Positions 1-57,700 of a stretch of DNA of 64,000 nucleotides are shown here, in pieces. A program made the translations under genes and the position numbers. Origin of the DNA: Cyanophora paradoxa CCMP329 (lineage: Eukaryota; Plantae; Glaucophyta); assembly GCA_004431415.1 (NCBI GenBank), contig QPMI01000046.1, positions 89,815 to 153,814 of the forward strand, read 5' to 3'. The notes under the pieces are model-generated. The model made no database searches and was not told where the DNA came from. It saw nothing but the letters and a program-made list of their open reading frames with translations. Within the stretch, counting starts at the first letter, position 1; every line of letters begins with the position of its first letter.

Positions 1-791
1 TACACGAAAGGATACGCCCAAGGGAGAATGCAAGTCAGCTCCAACGGAAGTTTTTGAAGCCGGTTGAGCAGGCGGACCGGTACGAACGGGGAGAACTCGT
101 GCAAGACGATGATGCCCCCGATCGAATTGCAGCTTTCTGGAGAGGGTACGAGAAGGCTACCAACAGGCCCGTGCATGGGCGCATTGCCCTTCTAGCGGAT
201 AATCTCAATGCGGGTTTCGGCCTCCTTCAGGGGTTTGCAGACGCCGGGGACCAGGCATCGACCTGGACCGTCTTTAGAAATGGTGAATTTGTCGAGGCGG
301 TGTTCTTCGACCACCCGACGGCAGTTCCAACACCCCCCGCGGGGTACATGGACTGGCTGTGGGCGAAATCTGGGCACCGGCGCCGGCGCCGCAGCGCCTA
401 TTTTGACGACGACGACGACGACGGTGACGACCAGTCGAGAGAGCTGTTATTCAATATCCTGATCGGGAACATCGACGCGCTTGGGCGCTTGTTCCCAGTC
501 GGCTCCGTTTCCGGCTTGCCCGAGATGTTGGGACGAGAAACCAACGAGGCCCTGGCCTTCATCGCCTGGATCCACCAGCCTGGTAATGGGATTCGGCGTT
601 GAGTGACCTGGCTTTCCTCAGCTGGAATGAACATTGACGGGGCGCCTTTTGTCGACCGGCGGAACTACGCCCGGTCGCGGCGGCCCCCGCCGCCGATAAT
701 GGCATTGGCCGGGTGTCTCTTCGTGTTAACTAGCGACGCAGCAGAGCTAGCTAGCAGGCTAGTAGCAGCGCTCGAGCTCAGGGCTAGCTGA
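1..791 (+). pseudogene. 5'-partial intronless ORF of unknown function with an in-frame TGA at 600-602
   Basis: Frame is open from position 3 to 602 with protein-like composition and an acidic D-run; the same frame continues to 791 after a single TGA. No family recognised. Confidence 0.35.
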
Positions 792-45700: not shown

Positions 45701-48700
45701 TGCAACTCCTCGTCCGCAACCTACCCGGGGTACGTGGAGAAGGCCAGCCAGAAGTGGTATGACCGCCGGAGCGGCTTGATCAACGACCTTACCCTGTGCG
45801 CACCCGTGAATGATTCCGGTCCAGATGCTGATGAGTATCCCTAACGGTGCAAATGAACGATTGCGCAGGTATCAAAACAAAGAAATTTCCTCGCCTCCTT
45901 CGTTCTACCAGGCGACCGCCAGCAATGATAATACTCTGACCTTGACCCCCGAGTACCTCAAGACCATCAAGTACTCGCTGAGTAAGTGGTTGTGTTGCTT
46001 TAAACCTTTTCATCTTTCCGGCGCTCACCGGTGACCCCGATAATCTTCTGCAGACACGAATTACTACATTGTGCGCGATTTACTTCGATATTATTCAATT
46101 TTGTTAAAACATTTTTCGATATTAAATTATGGCCACTCTGCAGGGCTGCGAAGCCCAAGCGGTCGATCCTGAGAGCGCTGGAGACACGATTTACTCCAAC
46201 TTTCCTGAAGCGACTGTTCGCTTCATCGGCCCGCCGGCTTCGAGGAACCCAGGAACTTGCACCGTTTCGCCGACTTCGGCCATCTTCCAGGAGGCGACCT
46301 TCACAGTGACGTGTTCAAACTGGCAGCCACCATTCAACGCGGCAAACGCGCTTCCGCTCACCTACGCGCTCAAGGTGCAAGCGAGTTTTTGCGCAAGGTA
46401 GTTTTCGAAAACTGCAACATCTGACGAATCGCACTTTGCAGCTGAATGCGACGGGCGAGGTTCTTGTGCCGGCTGGCTCTAGCAGCACTATGACCCCTTC
46501 ATACGTCTTCCCGGCCGGCAATCACGGCCTCGTCGTGACAATCTGCTCCAACAACGACTGCGGATGCTCCGGTACGATCTCGCATTGAATTCGCCGCTTT
46601 CCTTGTCGCTGAGCCGTGCTCAACTCGTGCGCAGACGTTCCGCTTAAGATCTCCGTCAAGCCGAAGCTCTCAGTGAAAGTCGAGGTGCCGCAGCGATGTC
46701 GATGGCTGGGCGCTGCTCGGGGCACTGGAGGTTGACGTTCCACAGGTGGAGGTATCGCCCCCGCCGGGAACCCCGGACACTGCATGCCTCAAGCAAACCA
46801 TCGTCGCCCGCTGCACCTCCTCGGCCACCGGCTACGAGACCTACCCCACCCTGGCCATACAGACGTGGTCTGCTCCGAATGGCGAGTCGATCCTGGCGAA
46901 CCTGAACAGCTCCCCGTGCGAAATCGCCGTGCTCTAGATAATAAGCTCGAATTCATTTGCGTCTGGCGCAGTTACTTCAAGGCAGTCTCGAAGGTCGATG
47001 ATTCCCTGACCTTCACGCCGGATCTTCGCCCTGCCTTTGCTATCAGTGAGCCCAACGATTCTCTTCTCGTTTGTCGAAGACCCTAAGCGTGCATTGTCTT
47101 TTGGCGCAATGTTTCTGCAGACACGAACTACGTTATTGTCAGTTCTTCCTCCGCCGTTTTTCTTCTGCGCACAGTTTAATATGCATTTTTCGTATAATTT
47201 GCAGCGCTGCTCTGCAACCGCGGACGACCCTACGAACCCGGGCACTCTCCTCGCGGCGGTAACCGACCAGGCCACTATCCGGCTGATCGGCGCGCCTGAG
47301 ACCTCGCCTGCTGGCCGGGGAACCTGCACGCTTGAGACGATCGTGGGCTTGTATCCTGAAACGCGCTACAAAGTCACGTGCTCGGGCTGGAGCGCCCCGT
47401 TCAACGTCGAGAAGGCGCTCCCGCTCACGTACTCCCTAAAGGTTAGCAGCTCTTGAGTCGGACGCCTTGCTCCGCGAAGCTGCGTCTGACCGCAGGCTTT
47501 GCAGCTGAAAGACAAGGTCCTGGTGGCGCCCTCGACGACGGCGGAAATGATCACCGCCGACGTCCCGTTGGGAACGCACACGCTCGTCGCGACCATCTGC
47601 TCGCCCAACGAGTGCGGCTGCTCCGGTGCGTGGGATGCTGTAAAAGCCGTGACGAGTCAGATTTTGAAGCCGAGATCCCCCGTTCTTTCGCAGAATTTGC
47701 GCTCCCGCCCGTGGTTGTCAAGGCCATTTTCAACGTTAAGGTCCAGGTACTCAACTTTTTGTTTCGGCATATAGAGCTGCATGGGCGGATCGCCGACTGG
47801 GCGTGCACAGGTCGAGGTCTTCCCGCCGCCAGGAACGTCCGAGAGCGTCTGCTACAAGCAGACCTACGTCGCCCGCTGCCTCTCATCCGCCATCGGCTAC
47901 CCCAACTACCAGAACCTCGCGATCCAGCGCTGGTCCGCGCCGAACGGCGAGCCGATACTGGCGAATCTCAACACTTCCCCGTGCGTGTTCGATTCGAAAC
48001 TGAATGAATTTGACCTGACCCGTTTCGAATACTTGACAGGTACTTCAATGCGTCTTCAAAGGTCAATGATTCCCTGACCTTCACGCCGGAACTCCGCCCT
48101 GCCTTCGAGTACAGTGAGTGCTGAGCTTTTCTCGGAATCTCCACGTGCTTCCTTGCTTGACTTTTCTTCTGCAGACAAAATATACAAGCTTGTCAGCCAT
48201 TTGTATGTGATCTGTTCGACTGTATCTAAACTCGAGCCGCCCTTCGCAGAAATGCTACGCGACGGCGCCCGACCCTGAAGATCCCAGCGTCGAGCTCCCC
48301 TCGGTGGCCGACGAGGCCACGGTTCAGCTCATCGGCCCGCCGGCGTCTCAGAACCCCGGCACCTGCGCGATCTCGCCGACGGAGGGCACGTTCATCGCGA
48401 CGACCTTCACCGTGTCGTGCCCCGGCTGGACCCCACCCTTCAACCTGGGGAAGGCCCTTCCGCTCACCTACTCGCTCGTGTGGTCCAAGGCGCGCTCCAC
48501 CCCTTCAGCTTCGAGGCGAATTCGAATGCGCCATCCACATCTTATCGATTGCCGCGCAGTCGCCATCGGAGATTCTGGTCCGGCCCCAACTCAACAGCGT
48601 CATGACCGTCCCCCCGATTCAAGTCGGCGAGCACACCGTCACCGCTGTCATCTGCTCGAACAACACTTGCGGGTGCTCTGGTGCGGATTACATGCCCGCT

Positions 48701-51700
48701 TCGAAATCATCCCCGCTTCAACCTCTGAGCCGCTCTGTGCGCAGAGGTGCCGATGAAGGTCACGATCAAGCAGCCGGACGACCCCTGCACGACGTACAGC
48801 AGCACGATGGCCGTGATCAGCGCGCAGTTCGCCGCCGGCACCATCACCGAGCAGCGGAAGACCATCATGGAGGCCGAGGCGATCGAGGCGCTGAGCAGGC
48901 ACTACGTGGGCCTGGGTGCGTCCAAGTCTGAGCTTGATCATGAATTCGAAGTAGAACGAATCGTGCTTGACGCCCAGCTTTCGTGCAGGGCAACCGCCTT
49001 GCTTGAACACCCTTATCGACAACGCGTGCTCAGCCGGTAGCGCTGCGCAGCGGCTGCAGAACCTTGCCAAGAACACGGGCGATATTGGAAAAGCGTTCCC
49101 AGAGCTGGAGGCGATGCTGAAGGCCATCAACACGCTGGCCAATGTCTCCAGCTCGTTCGTCTTTGCTCGTATCATTCGTTCATATGTCTGAGCATTTACC
49201 ATTCGCTTGCAACAGGTTCGTCAACTCGACGCTCTTCGAGAAGCTGACGAGATGCAAGCCCGAATTTGACCCGTGCGACTTTTTGAACCTCGATCTCAGC
49301 GTCTATTTGGAGCAGGTGCTCATATGTTACCTATAAGTAGCCATTCAAACGAAATGTGTATTGATGTCCCTTGCGCAGACCACTCAAGAGCTCTCCGCCG
49401 CCATCGCGAGCCCGGACTGGGTCGGCACCGCTGGCACGGGCCTCACCGGGCAGGCCGAGGCGTCGAGCAGCCCGCTCGCCAACCTGCTCAACACGCTCAT
49501 CAAGGGGCCCCAGGGCCGTCTCGCCAAGTGCGCTTATTCTTCACGCCACGACCTTGCAATTGCCTGTTCCAACACTGGGCTTCGGCACTGACGTCGACAC
49601 TTCTTCCTCTCCCAGCTGTCGGAGCTGCGAGGATGGCCTCCGTGGGGCAGCTGCCGATGCAGCAGCTGTGGTGCGCATTCTGTTTTCTTGACCATGTTCA
49701 TAACGAATCTCCAGAATACCGCCACTGAGTAAGCCCCGCTCGCTTGCACTTTGAACGCAACAGACGGCTGGCAAGAGTGCGTTTCACTTTTCCGATTTCA
49801 ATTTACAATAAGAATCGCTCTTGAACCATGTTTTGTCTTCTTACAGTTTGCTTCACGAACATCAAGTGCGAATTCGGAGCCTTGGATTTAAATTAATGCT
49901 TCTCGCCCGGGACTCGTTTGATGTCCAACGTTAACCCTCGCCTGCAGGGTCTACTACCCTATCCCAACTACTGCTGGCGGCTTTGGCGTCAACCCGGCAC
50001 TCGTCTTGCTTCCCTTCGAGGTCCGCGACTTCGTGCCCAAGGACGGCGGCCAAGACGGGTTCGAAACCTTCTCCTGTCCTTTTCTCGACGTGTTCTCGGG
50101 GATTCTCAGCCCTCTGCGCATCTCAAAACCGTAGATTCGGCGTGTCCATTCTCAACATGGAGCGGTCGCCGTGGCCGCCCGTCTGGAGGGGCCCCGAGGG
50201 CGGCCTGATCGTCGGCGCCGTCAAGATCACGGGCGGCTTCGTCGACATCTCGGTGCGCTCCGCTTCTTCGGAAGTGACGACCAGGCGGAATGCTTACAGC
50301 GATCGGCGCTCAGGTTCTCGGCTTCCGGATTGAGGGTCTCTCGCACGCGAAGCCGATTATCATCGAAATCCCGTACCCGGTCAATCAGACAACGATGCCG
50401 ACGGAGCAGCAGTACCTCATCTTCTGGAACGAGACCTCCAATAGCTGGGAGCCGTGCCAGACGCGTTATAAGCCGAAAATCAACATGTGGGTGCGTGATC
50501 GTTTGCACCTCTGTCAAGTAATTGAAGAAGAGCCGATGCCTAATCGCGATCGCTTCAGCTCGGCGTTGCGGATAACCCCGACCCGATGGCGACAAACGCT
50601 GGCGATCTCTTCCAGCGTAATGTGCGACATTCTTGATTTAATGCAAAAAAAGAAGCCTCCTCATGATCTCGTGCCAATTATGAACGTAGGGTATCTGGTA
50701 TGCTCGTGGATTCTGCACGCATTTGGTGCGTCGTCTGCCATTCGCACATGCGGACGCGTTGTTTTTTATTAATGCATTTTGTGCGCAGACCACGGCAAGT
50801 CTGAAAAACCATCCTGCGTTATCTGCGAAATGCAAACTTTTTTCTAATATCGTCGCGCAGTTCACACTTGGCCAAATCATTCCAAACTACTTCTCGGCAG
50901 GCCAGCCGGCATTCGCCGCTGGCATTAGCGAGCTCCCGCCGCAAGATGGTGATCGTGGCCAGGGCAACAGCAACCAGGTGACCCCAGTCGCTCTTATTCC
51001 CAAAAAAGTAGTGATTTTTAATAACACGTTCGAATTCCTGTCATCTGTTACAGATGTCGCACATCCTGCCGCTCGCGTTCGGCATCGGCGCTGCCGGTCT
51101 CCTCGTCGCTGGCCTCACCGCGGCGATCGTGAAGGGCACCCTCCGCGTGCCCAGCATCTTCCCGAAGGGCAAGGCGACGACCCCGTACGAGCCCTACACG
51201 GGCTCGGGCACCGGCACCGGCACCGGCGAGGGCGCGGGCGTTGGCTCACGGGACCTCGGCGGCCTGGGGAAGACGCCCTACAATCCGACAGGGCCGGGAG
51301 CTGGGTTGCCGGGCTCCGGGCTGGAGGCGCCGGCCCCGAGCCCGCTCGCCCCGTCGAACCTCTCCCTCACGAGCGCCGGCGAGAAGGGCCCCGGCTCGGG
51401 CAAGCTCACCTGGACGCCGCCGCTGGCGGGCCAGCCCGCCGGCTACAACGTCCTCCGCGACGGCGAGCCCATCGGCACCGCCCCCGGCAACCGCACGGAG
51501 TACCCGCTCTCCGGCCTTCCGACCAACGGCAAGCCCACGAAGCTGCAGCTCGTTCCATTCGACGAGAACGGCGTCGCCGGCCCGCCGTCGCACCCCCTCA
51601 CGACGGCCCTTCCCAGGGATCCGAACAGTGGCATCGCGCTCACGGCCCAGCCGATGGGCCCCGGCCCGAACCCCAGCGGCCATCTCGCCTGGAACACGCC

Positions 51701-54700
51701 TGCTACCGGCGCTGCGGGCGGCATCGGCGGCTACGCAATTCTCCGTGACGGCCAGCAAGTCGGCGTGGTCAAGCCCCCGAGCCCGACGCCGAGCGGCCTG
51801 AACACCTACACGGTCCGGAACCCCGGCTACAACCCCGGCGAGGAGGCGTTGTTCTCCGTGGCGCCCATCTCGCCCAGCGGCGAGATCATCGGCGCCCCGA
51901 GCGGCAAGGCTCCGTTGACTTCGTACCCGATCGGCTCCGGCGCGGGCCCGAACGCCAGCCAGCCGTCGATGGCGCCGACGGGCCTGCAGCTGACCAGCGC
52001 CGCCGGCATGTTCAGCTCCGGGAAGCTCTCCTGGAACCGCCCTGCCAGCGGGAGCCCGGCCAGCTACGGCATCGTCAGCGATGGCGAGATCGTGGGCACC
52101 GTTTCGGGTAGCGCGACCTCCGCCGACGCGCCGCGCGGCGGCAAGGTGTTCCAGGTCCTCCCCATCGACCGCTTCGGCAACGTCGGCCCTCCGTCGCTGC
52201 CCGCGTCGGGCGATCCCGGGATGGGCGCCCCTGGCCCTTACAACCCACTCATCGGCCCGGGCGCCGGCATCGCCGGCTCTGCCGTCGAGGGAATTCCAGC
52301 GAGCCCGCTCGCCCCCTCGGACCTCGCCCTCAGCAGCTTCAACGGCAGCGGCCCCGGCTCCGCCACCCTCTCGTGGCGCCCGCCTCAGAACGGCACTCCC
52401 AACAGCTACACCGTTCTCAAGAACGGGAAGCCCATCGGCAGCGTGCCCGGCAGCCAGACCTCGATCCCGGTCTCCGACCTGCCGACCAACGGCAGCCCAT
52501 CGACCCTGCAGGTCATTCCGTTCGACGAGAAGGGCTACGCGGGCCCGGCCTCGTCGCCGCTTGCCAGCGTCCTGCCGCGCGACCCGAGCTCCGGCATCGC
52601 CCTCACCTCGACGCCCATCGGCAACCCGAGCAACCCGAGCGCGCTTCTTTCCTGGACCACTCCCGCGAGCGACCTCCAGCCCGGCGCCGGCGGCCCTCCA
52701 GGGTGCGAATTCTCCCGCGAAACAGTGCTAGCGCAAGATTTCAAGCGAGCATTTGAGAGCAACGTTTTGATGGCTGACTTTCGGCCTCTCGCCAGGTACG
52801 CCGTGCTGCAGGACGGCCGCCAGATCGGCACCGTCAAGCCGTCGCCCTCCGGCATCAACTCGTTCACCGCGAAGAACCTGCCGAGCAGCACCGTCGCCGA
52901 GTCCCTCTTCTCCGTTGCACCCATCTCGCCCGCCGGCGACATCATCGGCCCCGCCAGCAGCAGCGTGCCCCTGCTCTCGTACCCCGTCGGCTCGGGCGCG
53001 GGCCCGGCGCCTCAGACGGCTATGATGCCCTCCAACGTGCAGCTCACGAGCACGCCGGGCCTCTTCGGCTCGTCGGGCCGTCTCTCGTGGAACCCGCCGG
53101 CGGCCGGCTACCCGGCTAGCTATGCCGTGGCGGAGGACGGCAAGGTTACCAGCACAGTTCCCGCCAACCAGACGACCTACGAGGTCTCTCCGAAGCCCGG
53201 CAGCGTCTACCAGGTCCTGCCAATCGACCGCCTTGGCTCTACCGGCCCTGCGTCACAGCCGGCCGTCAGCGGCAGCGATCCTTCCGGTGCCTCCGCTACA
53301 CCTTACGGCCCTTCGAACACTTTGATGGCGCCTGGCGCGGGCATTGCCGGATCTGGGCTTCGCGCGCAGCCCCCGAACCCGCTTGCCCCGTCGAACCTCG
53401 CCCTCAGTAGCTTCAACGGCAGCGGCCCCGGCTCCGCCACCCTCTCGTGGAGCCGCCCAGACAAGGGAGTTCCGGCGAGCTACACCGTCCTCAAGGGCGG
53501 CGTGCCCATTGGCAGTGTCCCTGGCAACCAGACCTCGATCCCGGTTTCCGGCCTGCCGAACACCGGTGGCGCTACAACCCTGCAGGTGGTGCCGTTCGAC
53601 AGCAACGGCGTTGCGGGCCCCGCCTCTGCTCCGCTTTCCGCCACGCTGCCTAGCGACCCGCGGACGGGCATCGCCCTCACCTCGACCTTGTCGGGTCCTG
53701 CGACGAACCCCGGCGCCGTTCTGTCGTGGACGACTCCGTCGGCAGCTCTCGAGCCTGGAGCGGGTGGTCTTGCGGGGTGAGCGTCGCATCTGAATCTCTT
53801 TAGTAAACTAATAAGTTTGCCGAAACTTTGTCGCTGAGGCACCTCTCTTGTTGCAGCTTCGCAGTCCTGAAGGACGGCGTGAAGGTGGCCAATGCAACGC
53901 CGTCCCCGACGGGTGTCAATGCTTTCACGATCAAGAGCCTCCCGCCCTCGGCCGGCGACTCTCTCTTCTCCATCATGCCTCTGTCGGCCAATGGCACGCC
54001 TATCGGGCAGGCAAGCAACAGTGTGCCGATCTCATCGTACCCGGCCGGCTCGGGCGCGGGCCCTGCGAGCCCAGCGGACATGGCGCCGTCGAACATGCAG
54101 CTGACAAGCTCGCCGGGTCTCTTCGGCTCATCGGGCCGCCTCTCGTGGAGCCCGCCGCGCGCGGGCAGCCCCGCGAGCTACGCTGTCGTCGGCAACGGCA
54201 AGGTCCTCGGCACCGTTCCGGCCAACCAGACCGCTTTCGACGTGACGCCCAAGAGTGGCGAGGCTGGCAGCGTCTACCAGGTGCTCCCAATCGATCGCTA
54301 CGGCAATGTTGGCCCTCCCAGCAGCCCGATTTCAAGCTCCGGCCCGGCTCCTGGCCCGTACAACGGCACTGGCGCCGGCGCGCCCGTTAGCGCTGATCCC
54401 TCTTCTCCGTACGGGCCCTCTTCTGGCCCCGGTGCGGGCATCGCTGGCTCTGGCGTCGACGTGCCCCCGTCGAATCCTCTCGCCCCGTCGAACCTCGCCC
54501 TCAGCAGCTTCAACGGCAGCGGCCCCGGCTCCGCCACCCTCTCGTGGAAGCGCCCGGCCTCGGGCTCGCCGGCCTCGTTCACCGTCCTCAAGGACGGCAA
54601 GCCCGTCGCGTCGGTCCCCGGCGGCCAGACCTCGGCCCCGGTCTCCGGCCTGCCGACCAACGGCGGCGCCTCGACCCTGCAGGTGGTGCCGTTCGACGAC

Positions 54701-57700
54701 AACGGCGTCGCGGGCCCGGCCTCCTCGCCGCTCGCGGCCTCGCTGCCGAGCGACCCGAGCTCCGGCATCGCGCTGACGTCGACGCCGGCGGGCTCCGGCT
54801 CCAGCCCGAGCGTAATTCTGTCGTGGACCAGCCCCGCCGGCCAGGGTGGCGTGTCGAGGTAGGTTTCTCGAATGCTGACACACTGATTCAAATGATTGAT
54901 TGGTATGCTCTTCTGCGCAGCTATGCTGTCATGCAAGACGGCCAGAAGATTGCATCGGTGCAGCCTTCGCCATCGGGCGTCAACACGTTCGCTTCGCGCA
55001 ATCTCCCTCCGGCAACTGCCGCGAAATCCCTCTTCTCTGTGGTTCCGCTGTCTCCTTCGGGCAGCCCCGCAGGACCGGCCAGCAGCAGCGTTCCGCTTGC
55101 CTCTTATCCGGTTGGATCGGGAGCTGGTCCAGCAAGCCCGTCTGCCATGGCGCCGTCGAACCTGCAGCTGACGAGCACACCCGGCCTCTTCTCCTCCAGC
55201 ACCTTGTCGTGGAGTCGTCCGCGCGCGGGCAACCCCGCGAGCTACGCGGTCGTCGGCGACGGCAAGGTCCTTGGCAGCGTCCCGGCTATTCAGACAACGT
55301 TCGATGTCTCGCCCAAGAGCGGCGAGCCCGGCAGCATCTTCCAAGTCGTGCCGGTCGATCGGTTCGGAGCGGTCGGCCCCGCATCAAACCCAATTAACAG
55401 CGGATCTGGCCCGGCTCCCGGCCCGTACAACGGTGCCGGCCCGGACTCCCGCGGTGTTCCTTCGACTCCGTACGGCCCGTCGTCCGGTCCTGGCGCGGGC
55501 ATTGCCAGCTCAAACGTCAACCTGCCCCCTGCGAATCCACTCGCGCCCTCGAACCTCGCCCTCAGCAGCTTCAACGGCAGTGGCCCCGGCTCCGCCACCC
55601 TCTCGTGGAGCCGGCCCAGCCAGGGAGCGCCCTCTGCGTACTCTGTCCTCAAGGACGGCAAGCCCGTCGCGTCGGTCCCCGGCGGCCAGACCTCGGCCCC
55701 GGTCTCCGGCCTGCCGACCAACGGCGGCGCCTCGACCCTGCAGGTGGTGCCGTTCGACGACAACGGCGTCGCGGGCCCGGCCTCCTCGCCGCTCGCGGCC
55801 TCGCTGCCGAGCGACCCGAGCTCCGGCATCGCGCTGACGTCGACGCCAGTCGGTACAGTTTCGAGCCCAGGCGCGCTGCTGGCGTGGACTTCTCCTAGCG
55901 GCCTCGGCAACGTCCCCAGGTGCGGCAGCCGTATCTCGCGCGTGGGGTCGGCTCTGCGGGCGCTGACGCGCTTTTGTGCGGCAGCTTCGGCGTCCTGCAG
56001 GACGGCCGCCAGGTCGCCACTGCCAAGGCCTCGCCGTCGGGCGTCAACACCTTCGCGCCCAAGGGCCTCAGCCCGAGCGCGGCGGCCAACGCGGAGTTCT
56101 CGGTGGTGCCGCTGTCGCCGTCGGGCAGCCCCGCGGGCCCCGCCAGCAACAGCGTGCCTCTTGCCTCGTACCCGGCCGGCTCGGGCGCGGGCCCCGCGAG
56201 CCCTGCGGACATGGCGCCGTCGAACCTGCAGCTGACGAGCTCGCCGGGCCTGTTCGGCTCGTCGGGTCGCCTCTCGTGGAGCCCGCCGCGCGCGGGAACC
56301 CCCGCGAGCTACGCTGTCGTCGGCAACGGCAAGGTCCTCGGCACCGTTCCGGCTAGCCAGACCTCTCACGAGGTTCCGGATCTTTCGCCAAGCAGCGTGT
56401 ACCAAGTCCTGCCAGTCGCGTCGAACGGCGCTGTTGGCCCCGCCTCGAGCCCTGTCACTGGCAACTCTGCCACCACTGGCGCCCCGAGTGCTGGCTCGCG
56501 CTCTGTTCCGTTTGGCCCTTCGAGTCCTTCCGCAGGGCCCGGAGCGGGCATCGCCGGCTCCGGCGTTGAAGTACCATCATCGAGTCCCCTTGCGCCCTCA
56601 AACCTCGCCCTTAGCAGCTTCAACGGCAGCGGCCCCGGCTCCGCCACCCTCTCGTGGAAGCGCCCGGCCTCTGGCTCGCCGGCCTCGTTCACCGTCCTCA
56701 AGGACGGCAGACCCGTCGCGTCGGTCCCCGGCGGCCAGACCTCGGCCCCGGTCTCCGGCCTGCCGACCAACGGCGGCGCCTCGACTCTGCAGGTTGTGCC
56801 GTTCGACAGCAACGGCGTCGCGGGCCCGGCCTCGTCGCCGCTCACGGCCTCGCTGCCGAGCGACCCGAGCTCCGGCATCGCGCTGACGTCGACGCCGGCG
56901 GGCTCCGGCTCCGGCCCGAGCGCGCTCCTCTCCTGGACCACCCCCACCGCTGCTCTCAGCTCAGACGCTGGTGGCCTCGCAAGGTGCGATTTATTACCGT
57001 ATTTTGTACCGAGCGTTCTCTGATAAGCGAATGCACGTCATCCAGCTTCGCCATCATGCAAGACGGGAATAAGATTGCGTCGGTGCCGCCGTCGTTGACC
57101 GGCGTGAATTCCTTCCCCGTCAAGGGCCTTTCCCCGAGCGCAGTCGCCACTTCGCGTGTCTCCGTTGTGCCCCTGTCGCCGAACGGCTCTCCGATTGGGC
57201 AGAGCAGCAACAGCGTTCCGCTCGCTTCGTACGCAGCGGGCTCGGGAGCGGGTCCTGCGAGTCCCGCGGAGATGATGCCGACGAACCTCCAGCTAACAAG
57301 CGCACCGGGCCTCTTCTCTTCCAGCACTTTGTCATGGAGCCGTCCGCGCGCGGGCAACCCGGCGAGCTACGCAGTCGTCGGCGATGGGCAGTTCCTCGGG
57401 GCCGTCCCTGCTATCCAAACGTCGTTCGAGGTTTCGCCCAAGAGCGGCGAGCCCGGCAGCGTCTACCAGGTCGTGCCCCTCGACAGCTTTGGAACAGCGG
57501 GCCCGTCGTCAAATCCGGCAAGCAGCGGCTCAGGCCCGTCACCTGGTCCGTACAATGGGGCGGGAGACGGACCTCTCTCCGGCCCCTCTTACCCGTATGG
57601 GCCCTCGTCTGGCCCTGGCGCCGGCATCGCGAACTCTGGCGTGGACGCGCCCGCCCCGAGCCCGCTTGCCCCGTCTAGCCTGGCCCTCAGCAGCTTCAAC

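Follow-up and report, generated by a model that had tools for sequence, protein, structure and literature searches.

Can six nucleotides, spliced in as an exon of their own, supply the residue at which a membrane protein of an alga would cut itself? The question is raised by a locus of the glaucophyte Cyanophora paradoxa CCMP329 (assembly GCA_004431415.1), of which 64,000 nucleotides (nt) of contig QPMI01000046.1 (positions 89,815 to 153,814, forward strand), hereafter the window, were analysed; all coordinates below are those of the window and all features described lie on its plus strand. The element of interest is ACCACG at 50789-50794, a 6-nt candidate exon that codes for Thr-Thr, the predicted nucleophile (P1') and the P2' residue of a site resembling the GPS, at which GAIN domains cleave themselves. 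It can be concluded from the analysis presented here that ACCACG is probably a real exon, most likely a constitutive one, which completes a GPS-like site, while the further idea of a first-pass annotation of this DNA, that the exon acts as a splice-controlled switch, gained no support.

Splice signals of the candidate micro-exon

The exon that precedes ACCACG (50690-50725, GGT..TTG) is translated as GIWYARGFCTHL, with C-T-H-L as its last residues; an acceptor ending in ...acgtag stands just before 50690, and a donor reading GTGCGT begins at 50726. ACCACG itself is preceded by the acceptor ttttgtgcgcag and followed at 50795 by the donor GCAAGT, a perfect match to the classical GC donor, and a further acceptor, tcgtcgcgcag, opens onto TTCACACTTGGCCAA (TTCACA.., FTLGQ) from 50861. 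Set between a 63-nt and a 66-nt intron, the string ttttgtgcgcag, ACCACG, gcaagt offers both the acceptor and donor signals of a micro-exon and flanking introns long enough for splicing. The first-pass annotation had listed these exons and introns together with ACCACG and FTLGQ, and every element was recovered at its coordinates, with 50690-50725, 50789-50794 and 50861 onward in one common frame. Its remark that skipping the six nucleotides leaves the frame unchanged was likewise confirmed by the frame that the three exons share.

The role of chance was gauged with 100,000 Markov-simulated introns of 135 nt each, the length of the segment 50726-50860. Any 6-nt candidate of the form AG..G[TC] was obtained in 26% of the simulated introns and a candidate with Thr or Ser as its first residue in 4.3%; candidates coding exactly Thr-Thr made up 0.05%, those with a G[TC]AAGT donor 0.09%, and the two properties jointly were encountered in 0. 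Within the actual segment, four internal exons that keep the frame can be drawn, and ACCACG is the only one among them with a consensus-like donor. Chance is not an explanation for ACCACG between its splice signals. The frequency of the GCAAGT hexamer in the window (7-8 per strand vs 11.7 expected) says nothing on donor usage.

With the read-through frame 50690-51745 as query (region 1-106), a protein word-index search returned 0 matches, and metagenome scans, whether with an alignment of the conserved exons (A2) or with a DNA pattern from a single exon, came back empty.

Comparison with paralogous gene models

The residues to be expected at the junction can be read from two EukProt models of C. 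paradoxa, tig00021532_g22184/5 (P0003 and P0004), which form a paralogous tandem pair. Both read ..WEPCDPYGTGLNMAIFFKDGTYYARGRCTHL-TT-FTVGEIELN.. and continue into a membrane helix and fibronectin-III repeats. The exons of the window were aligned to P0003 one by one by tblastn and in an alignment, A1 (Table 1), with an identity of 33-56% over the four larger exon pieces. Upstream of the junction the match runs through 50690-50725 up to ..CTHL, and downstream it resumes at Phe 108 with 50861 onward and passes onto the helix with 51054 onward. The residues of P0003 left uncovered at the HL/F junction are exactly TT, and ACCACG supplies both, so that the filling of this gap supports the inclusion of ACCACG.

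A 36-residue ENA peptide (P0005) placed in the 90% cluster of P0003 was rejected as mis-clustered, having no visible similarity to P0003. The contig of this peptide (ENA ERZ21742408 ctg5755l, 190 kb) carries Spond_N, TIL and PAE matches and is unrelated.

Flanking introns and mode of splicing

Both introns bordering ACCACG resemble complete, ordinary short introns. Their lengths are comparable to those of the nearby introns (46, 61, 80 and 93 nt), and their GC contents, 49% for the 63-nt and 42% for the 66-nt intron, stand against 50-56% in the adjoining exons. Each holds one copy of a T-run followed by TAAT, an element of which only 3 copies are present in 49-55 kb, at 50762 (TTTTTTATTAAT), 50838 (TTTTTTCTAAT) and 51015 (TTTTTAAT), i.e. 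in three consecutive short introns and each time with a putative acceptor 11-38 nt downstream; its role may be that of a branch site or a pyrimidine element particular to lower-GC introns. The absence of stops from the 63-nt and 66-nt introns is unremarkable, given that 44% and 27% of their respective shuffles are likewise stop-free.

In the C. paradoxa genome the mean intron measures 86 bp and a gene carries 9.2 introns (PMC6704402); at such a size a tiny exon should pose no recognition problem, and introns so short are expected to be removed one by one, with inclusion of the exon as the default. The 63-nt GT-AG and the 66-nt GC-AG intron would each serve as the unit of recognition (intron definition), and the spliced message would read ...W..W..C...C-T-H-L/T-T-F-T-L..., where the slash marks the predicted cut and the Thr nucleophile comes immediately past His-Leu. 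Self-cleavage would then fall on the Leu-Thr bond, as it does in GAIN/GPS domains. Starting from the observed splice signals and frame, the low computed probability of a chance origin and the agreement with the paralog models, we infer that ACCACG is spliced in and used constitutively, with a GAIN-like fold and cleavage as the presumed outcome.

Two other ways of processing the same segment have to be weighed. Were ACCACG unused, one 135-nt intron (50726-50860) would be removed and the protein would read HL-F, a cleavage-dead relative; an intron of 135 nt would be nothing unusual here, exons of 6 nt are generally rare and the GPS is recognised by no profile. This course of events is nonetheless quite unlikely, for Thr-Thr with such a donor would arise at this spot by chance in less than 0.1% of cases, TT is present in the paralog models and the segment contains two separate T-run/TAAT elements. 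Improbable to much the same degree is the retention of the 66-nt GC-AG stretch, by which a single exon, 50789-51007, would encode HL/TT and a 22-residue insert (ASLKNHPALSAKCKLFSNIVAQ) before FTLGQ. In this stretch the frame continues without a stop, the Thr nucleophile would be preserved, and the public model of the same gene (EukProt tig00000180_g13646.t1) also keeps an in-frame, stop-free GT-AG intron of 93 nt (52703-52795) which is removed in the model of a near-copy, g13624 (P0001). However, the paralog is without an insert at that place (A1), position +3 would no longer hold the conserved Phe, and the stretch has the low GC, T-run/TAAT and CAG acceptor of the neighbouring introns; its stop-free state, which 27% of its shuffles share, is no coding sign.

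The proposed splice switch

Regulated inclusion or skipping of ACCACG had been put forward in the first-pass annotation as a means of producing cleavable (HL/TTF) and uncleavable (HL-F) forms of a receptor. In keeping with such regulation, the frame is kept on the 6-nt skip, and the downstream donor is GC and not GT; in animals, donors of the GC type tend to be weaker and are alternatively spliced more frequently. Yet the GCAAGT donor is perfect, the segment 50716-50870 did not fold better as RNA than its shuffles (z = -0.26), neither an RNA structure nor an inverted repeat brackets ACCACG, and the introns are ordinary and short, which favours their removal intron by intron.

The notion of a clean switch is also at odds with what is described for latrophilin-1, in which mutants of the cleavage threonine, T838A and T838P, were unfolded (PMC3321182). 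By extension, a protein from which both Thr are deleted may be not simply uncleavable but misfolded, the loss of two tight-turn residues being likely to harm the fold beyond blocking cleavage. A switch at ACCACG is accordingly regarded as very unlikely, and the same low expectation is attached to a condition-dependent skip of ACCACG, or retention of the GC-AG intron, that would yield self-cleaving and non-cleaving (or degraded) forms from one gene.

Identity of the GPS-like site

For the constitutive 6-nt exon favoured here, the question that follows is what kind of site it completes. A sequence of the form H-L/T (or S) followed by x-Phe is obtained from C-T-H-L (50714-50725), T-T (50789-50794) and F-T-L (50861 onward), and only on condition that splicing includes the 6-nt exon. 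The joined C-T-H-L/T-T-F-T-L corresponds to CTHLTTFTVGE of the paralog, and the H-L/T-x-F site reconstructed through ACCACG in the first-pass annotation thus stands, whereas its terms GPS and receptor are an interpretation that goes beyond the profile evidence, with 0 Pfam GPS/GAIN matches.

The GPS of latrophilin CL1 is held by two disulphides, C801-C832 and C820-C834 (PMC3321182). When the motif was aligned by eye, both conserved Trp (..FW.., ..SW..) were found to be present together with the Cys counterparts of C820-C834, and both partners equivalent to C801-C832 were missing together. With one Cys pair whole and the other wholly absent, the motif would fit the disulphide logic of a GPS. 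Its position is directly before the first membrane helix (51063-51131), at about 54 residues counted from Thr+1, and REJ-type sequence lies upstream in three modules at 46-48.6 kb. The PLAT domain and the 11-helix channel-like C-terminal part of polycystin-1 were not found, fibronectin-III repeats being present after the single helix. The region is termed GPS-like by motif and context, and the predicted site would most likely work like a GPS.

Several observations weigh against a spliced-in exon completing a functional GPS. The Pfam profiles for GPS (PF01825) and GAIN (PF16489) gave no match in single exons or in P0003:1-260 and P0003:1-135, at E up to 10, and a PDB sequence search returned 0 matches. 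AlphaFold2 modelling of the paralog, based on shallow alignments, reached predicted local distance difference test (pLDDT) values of 42.8 and 44.0, too poor for use. Among language-model neighbours of P0003:1-135 in the ESM Atlas, ZU5 (0.86-0.87) ranked above GPS (0.80) and FIIND (0.78), all of them below the 0.9 from which such a score counts. P0003 and P0004, being 99% identical, count as one independent paralog, which is known from protein models alone. Both the 63-nt and the 66-nt intron are in frame and stop-free, and translatable retention isoforms are consequently also possible. Lastly, the public model, g13646.t1, was produced by BRAKER1 and is without the GPS exons, so that the annotation gives no confirmation of their expression or splicing.

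With regard to the neighbours named by the language model, ZU5, GPS and FIIND are usually regarded as beta domains that cleave themselves. Pfam ZU5 and FIIND profiles had no match in the exons or the paralog, and Pfam on all exon-bearing frames of 44.5-51 kb, taken singly, recovered REJ and fn3 only.

Gene architecture and public gene model

The features around the site are collected in Table 1. Taken together they suggest a many-exon, polycystin-like gene composed of REJ-type repeats, a GPS-like motif, one membrane helix and a long fibronectin-III tail. The REJ matches cover only profile positions ~312-357 of 452.

Table 1 Features of the locus on the plus strand of the window, with the evidence for each.
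Feature	Position	Strand	Evidence and remarks
REJ-type module 1 (exon-bearing open frame)	46129-46401	+	Pfam REJ PF02010, 26.8 bits (cut-off 25), E 2.5e-06
REJ-type module 2	47196-47456	+	Pfam REJ, 22.2 bits, E 6.3e-05, slightly below cut-off
REJ-type module 3	48304-48600	+	Pfam REJ, 29.9 bits, E 2.8e-07
Exon part (true 5' end uncertain)	50157-50252	+	P0003 residues 1-32, tblastn 48% identity; alignment A1; donor GTGCGC at 50253
Intron, 61 nt, GT-AG	50253-50313	+	Frame kept, ..FVDIS / VLGFRIEG.., as paralog ..FVDIT-VLGVPISG
Exon, first half of GPS-like motif (..LIFWNETSNSWEPC..KINMW)	50314-50490	+	Both conserved Trp, first Cys; P0003 residues 32-87, tblastn 55% identity; donor GTGCGT at 50491
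Intron, 199 nt	50491-50689	+	Boundaries provisional; other in-phase donor GTAATT at 50518
Exon, 36 nt, GIWYARGFCTHL	50690-50725	+	Second Cys and His-Leu (P2, P1 of predicted scissile bond); aligns to paralog ..YYARGRCTHL (A1)
Intron, 63 nt	50726-50788	+	GTGCGT...tgtgcgcag; T-run/TAAT at 50762-50773; in frame, stop-free; 49% GC
Candidate micro-exon ACCACG, 6 nt	50789-50794	+	Thr-Thr; predicted P1' nucleophile and P2'
Intron, 66 nt, GC-AG	50795-50860	+	GCAAGT...tcgcgcag; T-run/TAAT at 50838-50848; in frame, stop-free; 42% GC
Exon FTLGQII.. (predicted last strand past cleavage site) and 49-residue stalk to ..LIPKK	50861-51007	+	tblastn to P0003 residues 108-149; donor GTAGTG at 51008
Intron, 46 nt, GT-AG	51008-51053	+	T-run/TAAT at 51015; in-phase join of ..LIPKK to ATG at 51054
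Exon, single membrane helix (51063-51131) and first fibronectin-III repeats	51054-53776	+	g13646.t1 (P0006) 100% identical over 908 residues; Pfam fn3 E 2.3e-10

The 199-nt interval between the two halves of the motif may in fact consist of two 68-nt introns (50% and 40% GC) around a 63-nt exon, 50559-50621, which has 60% GC, an acceptor reading cgcttcag and a donor reading GTGCGA. This candidate exon would insert 21 residues (LGVADNPDPMATNAGDLFQRN) into the GPS-like motif; at the corresponding junction the paralog has 8 unaligned residues (A1), a net of 5 more than the window.

The 908-residue frame that starts at 51054 is 100% identical to g13646.t1 (P0006), which begins at the membrane-helix exon and ends at 54862 though fibronectin-III-like frames go on downstream; the gene is hence cut in two at the helix exon. 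Gene models of C. paradoxa were built by BRAKER1 with RNA-seq hints (PMC6704402). The near-copy g13624, on the same contig tig00000180, is 94-98% identical and was the sole match in a protein search with the helix region. Within what appears to be one gene, a sharp step in GC content is apparent in the 38000-64000 part of the window, from 50-57% in the REJ/GPS head to 70-76% in the fibronectin-III tail.

That the head (~44.5-51 kb) is no part of the expressed tail gene but a decaying or separate unit, for which micro-exon splicing would be moot, is the least probable of the alternatives, for although the public model begins at 51054, the GC content of head and tail differs and the protein search with the read-through frame turned up no model over the head, its exons are intact, in frame and similar to the paralog at the identities given above, the paralog model has GPS, helix and fibronectin-III in one protein, and the 46-nt intron 51008-51053 provides an in-phase link between ..LIPKK and the helix exon.

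Significance and comparison with known systems

Provided that the exon is real, it would tend to escape standard aligners and gene finders, which would return models that are without the cleavage nucleophile or broken at this point, as is the public model, and knowledge of the exon would allow the whole gene family to be annotated correctly. The GPS-type site, although outside animals, would retain the full His-Leu/Thr-x-Phe signature, which would make a cleavage test in the glaucophyte protein worthwhile. Should the switch after all be true, GPS-type autoproteolysis would be controlled by splicing in a lineage far from animals.

Among known systems, the GPS within the GAIN domain in adhesion G-protein-coupled receptors and in polycystin-1 (Arac et al. 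2012, PMC3321182) shares with the Cyanophora motif the H-L/T-x-F context, the two conserved Trp, a Cys two residues before the His that would pair with a Cys after the second Trp, and a location immediately ahead of the first membrane helix, where a large ectodomain ends; with polycystin-1 it also shares REJ-type sequence upstream of the site. The differences are that the Cyanophora gene is without a Pfam GPS/GAIN match and appears to be missing one of the two GPS disulphides, that one helix and a fibronectin-III tail are present as against 7 or 11 helices, and that the motif is divided among three exons, one of which, 6 nt long, would bear the nucleophile. The stalk of ~54 residues that leads to the helix is probably longer than in adhesion G-protein-coupled receptors and polycystin-1.

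Sea-urchin REJ and PKD1-family proteins, with REJ, GPS and few helices, offer a similar order of REJ module, GPS-type site and membrane anchor. In contrast, the present gene belongs to a glaucophyte alga, has a long fibronectin-III array past the helix, and gives a REJ signal made of three short repeated modules. ZU5 and FIIND domains (H-F/S type) are comparable in being beta-rich and self-cleaving before a Ser or Thr that follows His and a hydrophobic residue; to our knowledge, these autoproteolytic domains are cytoplasmic and without a link to REJ repeats.

As for the exon itself, micro-exons of animals and plants (3-27 nt) are likewise tiny, frame-preserving exons between complete introns that encode functionally critical residues. 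Those of animal neurons are regulated and situated between long introns, whereas the Cyanophora introns measure 63 and 66 nt, a setting that suggests constitutive splicing by intron definition. Micro-exons and GPS sites are both known kinds, and the case of ACCACG is an annotation-relevant variant of them.

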